From the sequence record LR756504.1: DNA of 64,000 nt, one strand, 5' to 3'. Made by a program: the position numbers and the translations under genes. A model generated the notes under the pieces. It was not told the origin of the DNA. It worked only from the letters and a program-made list of their open reading frames with translations, and made no database searches. This document shows positions 20,023 to 52,233 of the stretch, one piece after another. Position 1 is the stretch's first letter. Each line of letters opens with the position of its first letter.

Positions 20023-20592
20023 ATGAGAAATTCAATAATAGAAGAAGTAACAGAAGCAACTGCTGTATTATATAGATTTGCAAGCAATGAGAAGAACATT
20101 GCTAAAATAGAAGCATCTGCATCAATTCTGATAGATGCTTTTAAAAAAGGTAATAAGGTAATAACTTGTGGTAATGGTAGCTCTCATTGTGATGCTATGC
20201 ACTTTGCAGAAGAGCTAACTGGTAGATATAAAGAAGACAGAAAACCTTTACCAGCAATTGTAATATCAGATACATCATACATATCATGTGTATCTAATGA
20301 TTACGGTTATTCAGAAGTATTTAGTAGATATGTAGAAGCACTCGGAAAAGAAGGAGATGTTCTTTTTGCTATATCTACATCTGGAAATTCTGAAAATATT
20401 ATTAAAGCTATAGAAGTAGCTAGAAATAAAGGCATGAAAGTTATAGGATTAACTGGTAAGCATGGTGGTAAAATGAAAGGTGTGTGTGATATTGAAATAA
20501 GAGTACCACATTTTAAATATGCTCATAGAATTCAAGAAGTACATATAAAAATTATTCATATTCTAATAAATTTGATAGAAAAATCATTATGA
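20023..20592 (+). CDS. gmhA: Phosphoheptose (sedoheptulose-7-phosphate) isomerase
   Basis: [39 protein letters not shown]. Confidence 0.93.
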
Positions 20593-21263
20593 AAGTAATT
20601 ACTATTGGAGATATTCATGGTAGAGATCATTGGAAAAAAATAAATCCATATGAGTGGGATTTAATTATATTTATAGGTGATTATGTGGATTCTTTTAATC
20701 ATAGTGGACAAAGATGTTTAGAAAATTTAAGAGAGATTATAGAATTTAAGGAGATGTATAATGATAGAGTTATACTACTTTTAGGTAATCACGATATTCA
20801 TTATTTATACTTAGATACTCAATGGAGAGGTGCTGGTTTCGATGCAGAAATGATTCCTTATTATAGACACATCTTTAGTAATTACTATAATTTTCAAATA
20901 GCATATCAAAAAGATAATTATTTATGGACGCATGCGGGTGTAAATAAATGTTGGTTTGATAAACACATACCAAATACATCTAATTTGGAAATAGCTAATG
21001 TTATTAATGAATTACAGATAACTCAGGAAGGTAGAGAAGCTTTATTTAATATGGGATATGCAAGAGGTGGGATTGGATATGGTGGTCCTATTTGGTGTGG
21101 TAAAAAAGAAATGTATAGAGACCCTCTTACAAATTTCATACAAATAGTCGGCCATACACCTGTTAAAGAAATTGAGCAGGAAAATAGCAAGGAAGATAAT
21201 AGCACAATTTATTACATAGATTGTTTGCGTGATAGAGTAGACTTCTTACAACTAACAATTTAA
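20589..21263 (+). CDS. Calcineurin-like metallophosphoesterase
   Basis: GDIHG, GDYVD, GNHD, THAG, GHTP. Confidence 0.88.
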
Positions 21264-21264
21264 A

Positions 21265-21654
21265 ATGGGAAAGATTTTACAAAATGCAGCATATTGTTTA
21301 AAATGTGATACTTATATCATTTCTACACATACACACGATTATATAACATGTTATTGTGGTAATATTGCTGTAGATGGTGGAAGTGAATATTTAAAGCGTT
21401 CTATTGATGAAAAAGAATCTTACGATGATTTCAGCTTAAATACCGAAAGTATCCCAGAAGAAATTAGAGCAAAATTGTTATGGGGCTCAAGAGGTAAGGA
21501 TGGTACAGAACCGTTAAAATTTTTACCAATTGGACAAAGAGAAACTGATCATTTAGAGGCTATTTTGAAAACACAAACTCAAATAAATGAGTTATATAAA
21601 ACTGCAATAAGAACAGAATTAAGAATAAGAAAAATATCGAACGCATCATTCTAA
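21265..21654 (+). CDS. Zn-binding phage protein
   Basis: CLKC...HTHDYITCYCGNIAVDGG; ends RIRKISNASF. Confidence 0.65.
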   Translation: MGKILQNAAYCLKCDTYIISTHTHDYITCYCGNIAVDGGSEYLKRSIDEKESYDDFSLNTESIPEEIRAKLLWGSRGKDGTEPLKFLPIGQRETDHLEAILKTQTQINELYKTAIRTELRIRKISNASF

Positions 21655-21942
21655 TTCAGATTCATCCGTTCCATCATCTTCAATTTCTTCCTCTGACATT
21701 TGAATTAGATATAAAGTTAATTCTTGAAATATTTCATTCATCTGTGTATAATCGAACCATGTTGTACTATTTTCAAGAATTTCTAAAAATTCAACAAATG
21801 TATCTGTATCTGGCTGAAAATGAATAAATGCTTTATCATAGTCTAATCCTCTTTGATTAACGTATTGACAGAAGATAGAGTAAAAATCTTCTTCTTGTTC
21901 GGATGGTAATCCTTTATATTCTTCCCACTCGCTATAGTTCAC
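21646..21942 (-). CDS. Acidic hypothetical protein
   Basis: 98-aa ORF. Confidence 0.5.
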   Translation of the reverse strand: MNYSEWEEYKGLPSEQEEDFYSIFCQYVNQRGLDYDKAFIHFQPDTDTFVEFLEILENSTTWFDYTQMNEIFQELTLYLIQMSEEEIEDDGTDESELE

Positions 21943-23005
21943 TTTCTTTATTCTCTTTAATTTTACACTTTATATTTAAAAGACTTGGTGCTAAATGCTT
22001 TAAAGCGATAAGAATTTTTATATCATTACCATCAACTACTAATTCAACTATAAAATCTTTATTTTCATTAACTAAGAATCTTTCTTTAATATTAGTACTT
22101 GATTTTTCGATCCATTCTGATTTAGATGGAATATTAATTATATTCATTTTAGAATCAAATCTGAAATAAGATTCATCTGATATTGCATGATATTTCAATA
22201 AAATATTATGTACATCATCATATCTTTCATCATGTTCTTTAACAAGAGGGTATAATACATCTTTATTAAGAATATCATTCTTTATATTTAGATATTGAGA
22301 TTTGAATGTGCTGAAATCATTGAATGCATCAGGGGTTTTAGATAAATCAACATTCAAGTCATAAAAAGAACTGTAATATAATTTAGGTAAAGCTTCTATT
22401 TTAATTCCCAATCCTTTCATTTTAAAATTTCTATAAGTTTCCCAAGTTATTTCACCAATAATGTCTAAGAAATTAATATAATGCTTTAAAAATTCATCTT
22501 TCAAATTAGCTTTTACTAATTCTACCCATTTAGTAATTAATACATCCCAATTATCATGTGTATAAATTCTTCTAGCTGTAAATCCTAAGAATTTCTCTAT
22601 ATCAGTAAGTGATACTTTATCATCTACATTTTTGTTTCTTATTACATTATTATCAATTATTATACCACCATTATTTAAAATTTTAATAGATGATATATCT
22701 GCGAATTTTTCTTTTATTTTTAAAGATGCTTCAAAACATTTCTTTAACTTAGCCCAATCAGATTCAATATTTATACCTTTGATATTAATTAAATGTTGCT
22801 TTTCAATTTTTATTTCAGGAGTTTTTTTAATTTCAATTATAAGTCCTTGCCAAAATGAATTATCAGTTAAAAAGAAACGATTTTTCATAGAATTTAAAAA
22901 ATCAAAATACTCAGGTTTAAATACAGCTAATGCAGTTATAACCGAATAAATTAAAGGGAATTCACTTTTTCCTTCAGTTAAATATTCATTATATTTCTTA
23001 ACCAT
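21932..23005 (-). CDS. Hypothetical protein with CTS-like N-terminus (MVKKYNEYLTEG)
   Basis: 357-aa ORF. Confidence 0.6.
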   Translation of the reverse strand: MVKKYNEYLTEGKSEFPLIYSVITALAVFKPEYFDFLNSMKNRFFLTDNSFWQGLIIEIKKTPEIKIEKQHLINIKGINIESDWAKLKKCFEASLKIKEKFADISSIKILNNGGIIIDNNVIRNKNVDDKVSLTDIEKFLGFTARRIYTHDNWDVLITKWVELVKANLKDEFLKHYINFLDIIGEITWETYRNFKMKGLGIKIEALPKLYYSSFYDLNVDLSKTPDAFNDFSTFKSQYLNIKNDILNKDVLYPLVKEHDERYDDVHNILLKYHAISDESYFRFDSKMNIINIPSKSEWIEKSSTNIKERFLVNENKDFIVELVVDGNDIKILIALKHLAPSLLNIKCKIKENKESEL

Positions 23006-23082
23006 TTAGAGCATTGTTTTTGTTATATATTAATTTTTACAGTTGTATTGATAGTTTGAATAGAAAAAATAATATATAGAAT

Positions 23083-51027: not shown

Positions 51028-51104
51028 TGGTAGCCCATGCAGGATTCGAACCTACGTTTACAATCTGAATAGAAAGTCGTCCTAAGCCACTAGACGAATG
51101 GGCC
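51028..51104 (-). tRNA. tRNA-Glu-like with 8-nt anticodon loop CUAUUCAG (copy 1, CCA encoded)
   Basis: GGCCCAU/AUGGGCU acceptor, GUCU-AGUGGCUUA-GGAC D arm, AAAC variable loop, GUAGG-UUCGAAU-CCUGC T arm, A73-CCA. Confidence 0.8.
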
Positions 51105-51175
51105 AAATGGAAGGTCAGGGAGTCGGATGCGTACATCCTTAGACATGAAATATAATATATAAACTCCCCTCCTTG

Positions 51176-51250
51176 TAGCGTGTGCGGGATTCGAACCACA
51201 CGTTTTTTACCTGAATAGATAATCGTCCTGAGCCTCTAGACGAACACGCC
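51176..51250 (-). tRNA. tRNA-Glu-like with 8-nt anticodon loop CUAUUCAG (copy 2, no encoded CCA, bulged T stem)
   Basis: GGCGUGU/ACACGCU acceptor, GUCU-AGAGGCUCA-GGAC D arm, AAAC variable loop, UUCGAAU T loop. Confidence 0.75.
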
Positions 51251-51330
51251 ATTTAATTTATTTGAAGTTTTCAGATTCAGGGGGTTCAGCTACTTAGTTT
51301 CACTTCCTTACCTAACTTTAAACTTCCTTA

Positions 51331-51453
51331 CAAAGTTAATACTTTTTTTTCAATTTATCAAGTTTTTTTGAAGATTTATTTTCAACTTTTTATTCTTTTA
51401 TATTTCCGTCTGAAATACAATACAAAGTTAAGAAATTTACTTGAAATAACAAA
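51331..51453 (-). promoter_or_regulatory. Two tandem Bacteroidota-type promoters facing the tRNA genes
   Basis: TAACTTTG at 51338-51331 (TTG 20 nt upstream) and TAACTTTG at 51430-51423 (TTTG 19 nt upstream). Confidence 0.7.
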
Positions 51454-51498
51454 ACATTTCATAAAAAAAAACTACAAATAAAAACACATTCTATAACT

Positions 51499-52233
51499 AT
51501 GTCTATTTTAATAGTAGTCCCTGTTTTTAACAGAAAGAAAATCACCGAGTTAAGTTTATATCAAACTAATAGATATAAAGGTGATGGAAATAAACTTGTA
51601 GTATATAATGATCACTCTACTGAATATGATAATGAATTTCTATCGGAATATTGCGATGAAGTAATAACAATGCCTAAAAAAATGGGTGTTCAACATTTAA
51701 GATGGCATCATTTAAGAAGCTTTTTAAATCAAGATGAATACCAATACTTATATTTAACTGATAGTGATGTTATACATGACCCTCAATACATAACAAAACT
51801 AAAAGAGTACTATGGTAAATATATGTTAAATGATGGTAAGAAAATGCCTGTATGTTTATATAATACTATATATCATATGAATCAAGGGAACACATTAAGT
51901 GAGAATGGCATTATCCTATTAAGAAAAACTGCGCCTGGTGTGTCGATGTTCTTTAATAAAGAAATGGTTAAGCAAATTGTTAATAGTTTAGACAATTTAG
52001 GTAAAGATCCAGATTATGGTTGGGATTATTTTCCAAATCAATTTTTAAAAATTCCTTATATAACAAGCAATACATCATATTTAGAACACTTCGGGGCAAA
52101 TGGCTTACATTCATATGAAGGAAGAGCTGGTATGGATAAAGATAGAGCAATTAATCCAACGGAGTATTTACAAGCAATAAGAGAGACAGTCATAAATTAT
52201 ATATTATTTAATGGTGAAAAGCCTATTTTATGA
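51499..52233 (+). CDS. GT2/GT-A family glycosyltransferase
   Basis: IVVPVFNR, YNDHS, LTDSDVIHD, EHFG. Confidence 0.8.
   Translation: MSILIVVPVFNRKKITELSLYQTNRYKGDGNKLVVYNDHSTEYDNEFLSEYCDEVITMPKKMGVQHLRWHHLRSFLNQDEYQYLYLTDSDVIHDPQYITKLKEYYGKYMLNDGKKMPVCLYNTIYHMNQGNTLSENGIILLRKTAPGVSMFFNKEMVKQIVNSLDNLGKDPDYGWDYFPNQFLKIPYITSNTSYLEHFGANGLHSYEGRAGMDKDRAINPTEYLQAIRETVINYILFNGEKPIL

Follow-up and report, generated by a model that had tools for sequence, protein, structure and literature searches.

The Mahaphage bacteriophage LR756504.1 (636,363 bp) has, in our estimate, about an even chance of encoding a module for protein O-glycosylation in which most of the synthesis of the sugar donor is left to the host. 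The window analyzed, a 64,000-nucleotide part of this genome containing no N letters, carries a genuine GmhA together with a TibC/Aah-type (BAHT) enzyme and partner sugar-modifying enzymes, without the middle steps of donor synthesis. In the proposed mechanism, a nucleotide-heptose, most likely ADP-heptose, would be completed by a kinase, a phosphatase, and a nucleotidyltransferase of the host; the TibC/Aah-like iron-finger GT-B enzyme would transfer heptose to Ser or Thr residues of protein in the cytoplasm of the infected cell; a nearby GT-A (GT2) enzyme and a SAM-dependent methyltransferase would probably extend or methylate the protein-bound heptose; and the acceptor would most likely be a structural or fiber protein of the phage. 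The genes named in an earlier sequence-only reading were all found at the positions it gave, with scores far beyond chance, the one exception being the range assigned to ndk. Of its interpretation, the gene identities stood, as did the placing of BAHT, methyltransferase, and GT2 in one system, whereas a heptose donor made by the phage itself was not supported.

The BAHT open reading frame (ORF) at 47061..48230 (+ strand), which begins with a GTG start codon, scored 223.6 bits (cutoff, 200) against TIGR04414 (hepto_Aah_TibC), covering model positions 21 to 372 of 374, and aligned with TibC (4rap) at E = 1.6e-42. Residues C325, C328, C344, and C356 aligned with the four Fe-binding cysteines of TibC (C339, C342, C358, and C370), confirming the four-Cys iron finger previously read from the sequence. 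The catalytic Asp (D101), the Thr and Lys that contact phosphate (T216 and K220), and the Trp that contacts heptose (W286) were also present, and in an alignment of 120 homologs the corresponding D110, T226, K230, and W305 (TibC numbering) as well as the four Cys residues were essentially invariant. An AF2 model of the protein matched TibC with a TM score of 0.86 (range, 0.85–0.87), compared with 0.42–0.56 for WaaC and WaaF, and the match covered the NH2-terminal beta-barrel, the GT-B core, and the COOH-terminal iron finger. The barrel and the finger bind the protein substrate in TibC (PMC4358343). The beta-hairpin thumb, which forms the dodecamer in TibC, comprises 11 residues in the phage enzyme versus 20 in TibC; given that the short thumb is common to 114 of 120 environmental BAHT homologs, it marks a broad uncharacterized subfamily that extends beyond the LR756504.1 phage. 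On the basis of the curated HMM and the predicted fold, the ORF is thus a member of the TibC/Aah family (PDB codes 4RAP and 4RB4) and a putative protein O-heptosyltransferase, differing from TibC/Aah in being phage encoded.

Two substitutions bear on the identity of the donor. Arg-286 of TibC, which contacts adenine, is replaced by Leu in the phage enzyme and by Leu or Ile in 29 of 29 phage-clade sequences (it is Arg in just 17 of 91 homologs outside the clade), and Pro-300 is replaced by Ala. These changes would suit a donor other than ADP-heptose, such as GDP-heptose (alpha pathway) or a hexose nucleotide, and some Bacteroidota possess a GDP-D-glycero-alpha-D-manno-heptose route. Pro-300 is a determinant of stereoselectivity in TibC, whereas Arg-286 was proposed to select adenine through a contact that the same paper describes as weak (PMC4358343). 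Trp-305 (heptose O4), Thr-226 and Lys-230 (beta-phosphate), and Asp-110 nevertheless remain essentially invariant, the next-best structural matches of the model after TibC are all ADP-heptose GT9 enzymes, and three relatives have, next to BAHT, genes of the HldC/HldA type, which belong exclusively to the ADP-beta route. We consider a different donor quite improbable.

GmhA (D-sedoheptulose-7-phosphate isomerase) catalyzes the first committed step in heptose-nucleotide synthesis. The ORF at 20023..20592 (+ strand) exceeded the cutoffs of the NCBIfam equivalog NF001628 (307.5 bits versus 265) and of TIGR00441 (251 bits versus 209), and its product is approximately 69% identical to GmhA of Vibrio and Photobacterium. 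The solved structures of V. cholerae GmhA (E = 5e-83) and E. coli GmhA (E = 2e-79) share 65–70% identity with the phage protein, which retains the catalytic and Zn residues (H60, E64, Q171, H179, D93, and S118-T119-S120). The earlier assignment was therefore upheld, and the ORF is, as judged from its sequence, a bona fide GmhA. GmhA proteins of related phage contigs show 77–89% identity. Both GmhA and BAHT are kept in a sister phage on a single contig, and both genes have a phage-like GC content, features that support a phage origin for the pair.

A search of the whole genome for HldE/HldA, GmhB, HldC, and HldD found no homologs, so that four of the five steps of donor synthesis (kinase, phosphatase, adenylyltransferase, and epimerase) are absent genome-wide and GmhA is the sole encoded step. 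The absence of HldE, GmhB, and HldD from the window, which the sequence-only reading had noted correctly, thus extends to the full genome, and its proposal of a heptose donor made by the phage holds for the first step alone. The phage therefore cannot make ADP-heptose by itself and must use host enzymes. Its host is predicted only, as a member of Bacteroidetes. Many Bacteroidota have a stand-alone HldC-like gene, within 8 kb of which there is no kinase, GmhA, or GmhB, and the check for a host heptose route in this group thus yielded an HldC-like gene but not a complete route.

Heptose-pathway genes were also found in relatives of the phage. An HldC-type adenylyltransferase gene lies 0.3–0.8 kb upstream of BAHT in two of them (L020 and L134; E = 1.7e-46 and 1e-38, respectively, against the COOH-terminal half of E. 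coli HldE), and in a third (L038) BAHT is directly followed by HldC and an HldA-like kinase. The adjoining of HldC, or of HldC and a heptose kinase, to BAHT in these three relatives supports ADP-heptose as the likely donor and shows selection for donor supply in phages that carry BAHT. Among other Mahaphages, LR756511 encodes a full HldE and LR756501 the kinase half of HldE as well as a BAHT.

Such gene pairs, together with the joint retention of GmhA and BAHT in the sister phage, point to a functional link between the two enzymes. The genes are, however, separated by 26.5 kb, and the neighbors of GmhA (an HD-like hydrolase and a lambda-type metallophosphatase, the latter absent from the sister phage) are unrelated. 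No overlap was found between viral contigs with GmhA and those with BAHT outside LR756504.1 and its sister, and heptose genes, alone or clustered, occur without BAHT in cyanophages and high-GC phages. GmhA and BAHT might accordingly be unrelated auxiliaries, with GmhA sustaining or altering heptose of the host envelope (LPS core or capsule) and the transferase taking a host donor, in the absence of a dedicated pathway. We regard this explanation as unlikely.

The methyltransferase and GT2 genes of the proposed module were both present, with Pfam scores above cutoff. The class I SAM-dependent methyltransferase (Methyltransf_23; 42.8 bits versus 27) is encoded at 48868..49428 (+ strand) and possibly methylates the sugar; in L018 and L019, the loci of the sister phage, its gene follows BAHT at a distance of 4 bp. 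Its stop codon is overlapped by 4 bp by the start of a gene for a 238–amino acid predicted membrane protein (49425..50141, + strand), which is kept directly behind the methyltransferase in the sister phage and has no match in Pfam, NCBIfam, or PHROG; whether it belongs to the glycosylation system is uncertain. The GT2 gene (51499..52233, + strand; Pfam Glycos_transf_2, 29.8 bits versus 23.3) encodes a TDSD motif, and its AF2 model showed a confident GT-A fold (pLDDT, 96.7) whose best PDB matches were GnT-I, POMGnT1, LH3, and TarP. It is probably a second sugar transferase.

Homologs of this GT2 lie near BAHT in L020, L021, and L133 and were found 0.3–5 kb downstream of BAHT in all four of the distinct related huge-phage lineages whose flanking sequence reached 10 kb or more, a proximity that could be due in part to a gene order shared by these related phages. 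Fusions to TPR or FKBP-like domains, which bind protein, are common in the GT2 family, and GT9-like fusions also occur. In other phages, GT9/BAHT domains are fused with Methyltransf_23/24/25 or FkbM as well as GT2 or GT1 in single polypeptides, as exemplified by GT1-MTase-BAHT-MTase-GT2, although for methyltransferase and BAHT such fusions provide a family-level link only. Together, the gene proximity and the fusions support the view that BAHT, GT2, and the methyltransferase likely form one glycosylation system, as the earlier grouping had it.

With regard to the acceptor, heptosylation of virion or host-surface proteins is plausible from gene context. BAHT is situated between a collagen-like tail fiber gene and the genes for tail sheath, tube, and baseplate in L026, and adjoins a 2106–amino acid collagen-repeat protein in L040. 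A collagen-like ORF is present within 10 kb of BAHT in 10 of 20 more distant phage lineages, and in smaller phages BAHT is located in tail modules by collagen-like fiber genes. No collagen-like protein is encoded by the LR756504.1 phage itself, nor was any obvious autotransporter-like repeat protein found in it, and Pfam scans of the window ORFs revealed no autotransporter domain, again unlike TibC/Aah. Its BAHT is surrounded by genes for a sigma factor, NusG, cREC_REC, a DnaQ-like exonuclease, and ribonucleotide reductase, a transcription and replication setting rather than a structural block that is kept in relatives. This setting and the missing fiber gene would fit modification of host proteins by the same chemistry, either of surface adhesins or secreted proteins (receptor masking or superinfection exclusion) or of cytoplasmic proteins (takeover). 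Characterized BAHTs do act in the cytoplasm on bacterial surface proteins before export (PMC4358343). There is, however, no nameable host target, many other phages carry the enzyme inside tail modules by fiber genes, and where a gene lies in a huge phage says little about expression timing or target. Host proteins as targets therefore appear unlikely, and we favor a structural or fiber protein of the phage.

DNA might also serve as acceptor, given that mono- and diheptosyl-5hmC have been reported for phage GT-B enzymes encoded with HAD/kinase and cytidylyltransferase genes (preprint, 10.1101/2023.12.21.572611). The window contains many DNA-metabolism genes, and two GT2 paralogs flank a thymidylate synthase gene in L021. 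The 5hmC-glycosylating clusters resemble the present system in combining phage glycosyltransferases, host LPS-type sugar nucleotides, and partial phage donor pathways, but their transferases are T4 beta-GT-like, as with the 5hmC-heptosylating enzymes, or JGT/TarP-like rather than TibC-like and are paired with hydroxymethylating enzymes (10.1101/2023.12.21.572611). In the phage BAHT, in contrast, the TibC architecture is complete, protein-binding barrel and finger included, and in other phages BAHT lies beside fiber, GT1, FkbM, and GDP-mannose dehydratase genes. A search of the genome limited to a ThyA query gave no evidence of hydroxymethylating enzymes; the sole ThyA-family gene resembles B. 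subtilis ThyA (E = 1e-37) and retains the dUMP-specifying Asn. Decoration of hydroxymethylated phage DNA bases thus seems extremely improbable.

Virus-encoded glycosyltransferases of mycobacteriophages, chloroviruses, and mimiviruses decorate capsid or fiber proteins, with enzyme families and sugars that differ from BAHT and heptose; we know of no heptose or BAHT-type enzyme in these systems. The glycosylated collagen-like fibers of giant viruses parallel the pairing of BAHT with collagen-like fiber genes in other phages. GmhA, an HldA-like kinase, and a nucleotidyltransferase are annotated as heptose synthesis in the T4-like cyanophages S-CAM1, P-SSM2, S-SSM7, and P-TIM68, and complete HldC-GmhB-HldA-GmhA clusters occur in high-GC phage contigs (IMG/VR L166, L167, and L171–L174). 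Several or all steps are thus encoded together in those phages, whereas in LR756504.1 GmhA stands alone and far from the transferase; none of the heptose-cluster phages was recovered by the BAHT search. The modification had been described as uncharacterized in phages, and our literature search indeed found no publication on phage protein heptosylation by such an enzyme. Databases nonetheless already contain heptose genes of phages and phage proteins labeled "Aah/TibC," including a viral UniProt entry named "Glycosyltransferase Aah/TibC," and heptosylation of 5hmC in phage DNA has been reported.

The two remaining genes named by the sequence-only reading, fbp and ndk, both exist. The fbp gene (42792..43814, + strand; Pfam FBPase, E = 1e-62, and FBPase_C, E = 1e-44), which encodes a class I fructose-1,6-bisphosphatase, is kept in the sister phage and may tentatively be linked to GmhA through the supply of precursors, both pentose phosphates and sedoheptulose-7-phosphate. 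The ndk gene lies at 59233..59646 on the minus strand, beyond the range of 20023–52233 in which it had been placed.

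The window matched positions 410061–474060 of LR756504.1, a 636,363-bp record titled "uncultured phage" and carrying no annotation, with 100% identity; it had a GC content of 26% and contained no N. The genome is among the four largest curated by Al-Shayeb et al. 2020 (PMC7162821) and belongs to the Mahaphage clade, for which Bacteroidetes are the predicted hosts. We took in the remainder of the genome as L001–L013, so that all 636 kb could be searched. The genes named in the sequence-only reading (GmhA, BAHT, methyltransferase, GT2, fbp and ndk) were all found to be real, although ndk lies at 59233–59646 (–), beyond the range of 20023–52233 that had been assigned to the set. 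The class I FBPase (42792–43814, +) and the methyltransferase (48868–49428, +) scored over the Pfam cut-offs, as did GT2 (51499–52233, +; PF00535, 29.8 versus a cut-off of 23.3). Overall, the gene observation is confirmed and its interpretation as a heptose pathway is partly supported. What the phage carries is a thumb-less variant within a known enzyme family, together with an incomplete donor pathway that would depend on the host.

The ORF at 47061–48230 (+) belongs to BAHT, the TibC/Aah family of autotransporter heptosyltransferases. It scored 223.6 bits with TIGR04414 ("autotransporter strand-loop-strand O-heptosyltransferase"; cut-off, 200), protein residues 22–370 aligning with model positions 21–372 of 374, and it matched TibC with E = 1.6e-42. 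With reference to the functional residues defined for TibC by Yao et al. 2014 (PMC4358343), the catalytic base Asp-110 corresponds to D101 of the phage protein, the donor contacts Thr-226, Lys-230, and Trp-305 to T216, K220, and W286, and the cysteines C339/C342/C358/C370 to C325/C328/C344/C356, which would form a 1Fe-0S iron finger as in TibC. The catalytic and donor-contact residues as well as the four cysteines were invariant or nearly so across 120 BAHT homologues. An AlphaFold (AF2) model of the phage protein (pLDDT 86.8) resembled the TibC structure, with a TM score of 0.85–0.87 and an rmsd of 2.2–3.0 Å over about 380 columns, and both the NH2-terminal beta-barrel and the atypical GT-B catalytic domain were predicted. 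The second-best structural matches, the GT9 lipopolysaccharide heptosyltransferases WaaC and WaaF, gave TM scores of only 0.42–0.56.

In TibC, Arg-286 contacts N1 of adenine, Pro-300 determines selectivity for D,D- versus L,D-heptose, and a beta-hairpin thumb with Phe-265/Val-266 at its tip joins dimers into a ring dodecamer (Yao et al. 2014, PMC4358343). The phage enzyme differs at all three sites: the adenine-selecting Arg is replaced by Leu267, which is followed by Lys268; the position of Pro-300 is occupied by Ala; and the segment corresponding to the thumb (TibC residues 254–273) comprises 11 residues instead of 20, with the Phe-Val tip deleted. In the alignment of 120 homologues, all 29 phage-clade sequences had Leu or Ile at the Arg-286 site, whereas Arg itself occurred in 17 of the 91 others, and a short thumb was common to 114 of the 120. 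Given that the loss of Arg-286 extends throughout the phage clade and that the short thumb is so widespread, these are traits of a large environmental subfamily rather than of a single gene.

The change at Arg-286 makes a donor other than heptose possible, but the residues that contact heptose and phosphate are invariant, and genes for the adenylyltransferase HldC and the kinase HldA adjoin BAHT in relatives, both of which disfavor such a donor. A 163-amino acid HldC is encoded just upstream of BAHT in the relatives L020 and L134, whose BAHT proteins are 49–52% identical to that of the window; these HldC proteins matched the adenylyltransferase half of Escherichia coli HldE with E = 1.7e-46 (L020) and 1e-38 (L134). 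At a further locus, L038, HldC and an HldA-like kinase directly follow BAHT. On this indirect evidence, heptose is the likely sugar, and the same neighbors provide indirect support for a putative function as an O-heptosyltransferase that uses ADP-heptose as donor and protein Ser residues as acceptors. A "cytidylyltransferase-like" neighbor of BAHT in Microcystis phage Mel-JY01 was rejected as an HldC candidate, as it is not an HldC homologue.

The product of the ORF at 20023–20592 (+) was confirmed as GmhA, the isomerase of sedoheptulose-7-phosphate, scoring 307.5 bits with the NF001628 equivalog (cut-off, 265) and 251 bits with TIGR00441 (cut-off, 209), whereas the model for the paralogue DiaA yielded 139 bits, far under its cut-off of 352. 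Structures of GmhA from Vibrio cholerae (E = 5e-83) and E. coli (2e-79) were matched in a gapless alignment, compared with E = 6e-37 for DiaA structures. Residues H60, E64, Q171, and H179 correspond to H61, E65, Q172, and H180 of E. coli GmhA, and a Ser-Thr-Ser motif is present as S118-T119-S120; on the basis of the E. coli and Burkholderia pseudomallei structures, we take these to be catalytic or metal-binding residues and the phosphate-binding motif, respectively. The equivalog scores and the catalytic residues rule out a DiaA-like replication factor.

The sequence-only reading had proposed that the phage makes its own heptose donor and had noted that HldE, GmhB, and HldD are not encoded in the window. 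We searched the 2638 stop-to-stop ORFs of the entire 636-kb genome by phmmer (E <= 1) with E. coli HldE, both entire and as its separate kinase and adenylyltransferase halves, with E. coli GmhB, HldD, WaaC, and WaaF, and with phage-borne HldC and HldA-like proteins. No ORF matched any of these queries, and hence none matched a heptose-7-phosphate kinase, 1,7-bisphosphate phosphatase, heptose-1-phosphate adenylyltransferase, or 6-epimerase in this search, which very divergent or non-orthologous replacements might escape, and motif expressions for the PfkB, cytidylyltransferase, NTP-transferase, GHMP, HAD, and SDR families retrieved nothing from the whole genome. The absence of HldE, GmhB, and HldD thus extends to all 636 kb, leaving GmhA, the first committed step, as the only part of the pathway that the phage encodes; the proposal of a self-made donor is not supported.

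Phages that need self-sufficiency carry more of the heptose pathway. Complete HldC-GmhB-HldA-GmhA clusters, unaccompanied by BAHT, were present in six IMG/VR contigs (L166, L167, and L171–L174; 60–67% GC), and HldA-GmhA only in three others (L168–L170). T4-like cyanophages contain annotated clusters of kinase, nucleotidyltransferase, and isomerase genes, and among other Mahaphages a full HldE is encoded in LR756511 and its kinase half in LR756501. E. coli HldE was also matched by 54 Streptomyces phage records.

The host side calls for caution with regard to heptose. The closest cellular kin of L020 HldC are proteins of ~160 amino acids that many Bacteroidota, gut Bacteroidales among them, encode in a stand-alone gene (loci L051–L130) and that resemble the adenylyltransferase domain of HldE closely (E about 1e-40). 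At these loci, no gene for a kinase, GmhA, GmhB, or HldD was found within 8 kb of the stand-alone gene, whereas HldE is fused in Proteobacteria, with GmhA, GmhB, or HldD close by in several loci. The gmhA gene of Flammeovirga likewise stands alone. Neither gene neighborhoods nor the literature demonstrated a complete host heptose route in Bacteroidota.

Conserved gene neighborhoods and domain fusions both connect BAHT with GT2 and a methyltransferase. Directly upstream of BAHT are genes for a cREC_REC ("cyclic-phosphate processing receiver") protein and a sigma-70-like factor (45662–46574, +), an arrangement kept in phage contigs whose BAHT is about 50% identical, and the order cREC_REC, sigma-like factor, BAHT, NusG remained syntenic in phage contigs at identities as low as about 45%. 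A GT2 homologue was located within 5 kb downstream of BAHT in all four distinct lineages with sufficient flanking sequence, at a distance of only about 0.3 kb in the most divergent of them (L021), and in the sister phage a gap of 4 bp separates BAHT from the methyltransferase gene that follows it. In other phages, fusion proteins were found in the order GT1-Methyltransf_24-BAHT-Methyltransf_25-GT2 (L032), Methyltransf_23-GT1-BAHT (L037), Methyltransf_23-BAHT (L044), GT1-GT2-BAHT (L150), and GT1...BAHT (Mel-JY01); the BAHT of LR756501, a 743-amino acid fusion in a non-syntenic context, was uninformative. The window methyltransferase was rejected as an orthologue of the BAHT-fused methyltransferases, with which it shares only the superfamily (a 45-amino acid local match, E = 2e-5).

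The GT2 family is small, with 215 matches among 1.8 billion representatives. Its homologues (proteins P0245–P0248) are repeatedly fused to TPR repeats, an FKBP-like domain, or a GT9-like NH2-terminal domain with a GSLGD motif, a pattern suggestive of protein substrates and of repeated pairing with enzymes of the heptosyltransferase fold. In the TDSD sequence, which represents the DxD motif for metal and nucleotide, D88 and D90 were nearly invariant among 66 homologues, and the AF2 model (pLDDT 96.7) showed a confident GT-A fold. Comparison with GnT-I, POMGnT1, LH3, KfiA, and TarP gave TM scores of 0.5–0.62, which indicate generic similarity only; it was at this generic level that the model was closest to GnT-I and POMGnT1, which extend protein-linked mannose. 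Searches of PDB sequences with GT2 and with the methyltransferase yielded zero matches.

GmhA is a weaker member of the glycosylation system than are BAHT, GT2, and the methyltransferase. It lies 26.5 kb from BAHT. Both genes are kept in the sister phage, and GmhA is conserved (77–80% identity) in further phage-like contigs; outside the lineage of LR756504.1, however, the viral contigs found with GmhA did not overlap those found with BAHT. The closest GmhA (80%) and a BAHT (49%) were carried by contigs deposited as "MAG: Bacteroidota bacterium" (L047, GCA_046049925.1 contig JBJOQR010000251.1, and P0016). Apart from an ART-PolyVal gene and a Pyr_excise gene similar to T4 endonuclease V, L047 is made up of tiny unannotated ORFs and thus resembles phage DNA; these contigs are probably those of huge phages binned with their host.

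Two neighbors of GmhA were rejected as pathway genes. The start of a metallophosphoesterase gene (20589–21263, +) overlaps the GmhA stop by 4 bp, but its product is a lambda/ApaH-type PPP enzyme that is missing in the sister phage, where DUF7695 directly follows GmhA with no metallophosphoesterase in between; a recent insertion is thus more probable than a role as pathway partner or surrogate phosphatase. An HD-like gene upstream of GmhA (19128–19973) is syntenic in the locus L049 and missing in L047, and showed no link to heptose.

The sequence-only reading had also proposed heptosylation of virion or host-surface proteins. Unlike the TibC and Aah systems, the phage BAHT has no cognate autotransporter gene nearby, and Pfam scans of the window ORFs detected no autotransporter domain. 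No Ser-rich repeat protein of the AIDA/TibA type emerged when the whole genome was scanned for repeats; the only two proteins with internal repeats, a scaffold-like protein with a 14-amino acid repeat and another with a 15-amino acid repeat, are not Ser-rich. Collagen-like (GXY) runs were also absent from the whole LR756504.1 genome.

We clustered BAHT loci from viral and metagenome contigs into 31 lineages at 80% identity, 11 of which were of huge phages and 20 of which had BAHT proteins at about 35% identity. A collagen-like ORF was present within 10 kb of BAHT in half (10/20) of the latter and in none of the 11 huge-phage lineages. These ORFs, such as those at L026, L040, L029, L036, L039, L043, L045, and L131, are very large, and GT1, FkbM, and GDP-mannose dehydratase genes often lie in their company. 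In L026, a smaller phage, the collagen-like ORF (2–5611) matches tail-fiber families and is followed by two unknown genes, a glycosyltransferase gene, BAHT, and genes for the tail sheath, tail tube, baseplate hub, and tape measure. In another, L040, BAHT adjoins a 2106-amino acid collagen-repeat protein (11118–17435; 364 GXY triplets) and also GDP-mannose dehydratase, GT1, and FkbM genes. These neighborhoods point to fiber or virion glycosylation as the putative role of BAHT in the collagen-associated smaller phages. The window BAHT has a different setting, one of transcription and replication genes, its neighbors being a sigma factor, a small membrane protein, the methyltransferase, a DnaQ-like exonuclease, and GT2. 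Given this location and a genome devoid of both GXY runs and Ser-rich autotransporter-like repeat proteins, a host protein remains a serious alternative as the target of the window phage.

Action of the glycosyltransferases on phage DNA instead of protein deserves consideration as a rival reading, given the reported synthesis of heptosyl-5hmC by phage enzymes (10.1101/2023.12.21.572611). Those enzymes are T4 beta-GT-like, however, and the only ThyA-family gene found in the genome appears to be an ordinary thymidylate synthase, both of which weigh against such a modification of DNA.

The suggestion that such a modification is not characterized in phages holds in that we found no paper on phage BAHT-type enzymes, and the main text of Al-Shayeb et al. 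2020 (PMC7162821) mentions neither glycosylation nor heptose. The idea is not wholly new, however: phage heptose-pathway genes have been annotated before, a viral UniProt entry is already named "Glycosyltransferase Aah/TibC", and one huge-phage study listed a heptosyltransferase as an auxiliary gene. Tentatively, and with considerable doubt, we propose that thumb-less TibC-like enzymes might constitute a widespread class of phage protein O-heptosyltransferases, often fused to methyltransferase, GT1, or GT2 domains, that would build methylated heptose glycans on virion fiber proteins. Their targets would be collagen-like tail fibers in smaller myoviruses and a different target in Mahaphages, and they would represent the first viral protein heptosylation system, fed in the present phage by a GmhA that taps the host pentose-phosphate pool.

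Virion glycans alter how phages adsorb, how stable they are, and how immune systems and bacterial defenses recognize them, yet to our knowledge very few examples of protein glycosylation by phages have experimental proof. The appeal of a TibC-type enzyme is that both its structure and its chemistry (O-linked heptose on Ser) are understood, and the phage version therefore lends itself to direct tests in laboratory E. coli strains, which produce ADP-heptose. If the proposed link holds, huge phages would redirect host sedoheptulose-7-phosphate into a protein-decorating sugar, the BAHT family would reach beyond the autotransporter adhesins of pathogens, and collagen-like phage fibers, like those of giant viruses, which are glycosylated, may carry glycans. 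It would also bear on ADP-heptose biology, given that metabolites of heptose act as signals in innate immunity. Should the link fail, GmhA and BAHT would be just two ordinary auxiliary genes of a very large phage.

Several other genes of the window deserve mention. Beside the FBPase gene is a cupin gene (42140–42622, +) that matched PHROG 4786 ("cysteine dioxygenase") with E = 1e-34; a gene with the same annotation lies beside heptose kinase and nucleotidyltransferase genes in cyanophage P-TIM68. This parallel may be a coincidence or may reflect a sugar-modifying cupin. Two tRNA-like genes (51031–51104 and 51176–51250, both –; Rfam RF00005, 40.5 and 35.2 bits) sit between the DnaQ-like exonuclease gene and GT2; ARAGORN recovered the first only, with a two-base anticodon called undetermined. 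The large subunit of ribonucleotide reductase is split across 26785–31079 (+): the ORF at 26785–28002 encodes the ATP-cone, the N-domain, and the first part of the barrel followed by a Hint/intein domain, that at 29547–31079 encodes the remaining barrel, and a 307-amino acid zinc-finger-like ORF (28056–28979) lies between them. The split is probably attributable to an intein or mobile insertion. An Rce1-like CAAX protease (41165–41704), a rhomboid protease (55761–56609), and an aldehyde dehydrogenase (59704–61218; E = 1e-126) are also encoded, all of which are unusual auxiliary genes.
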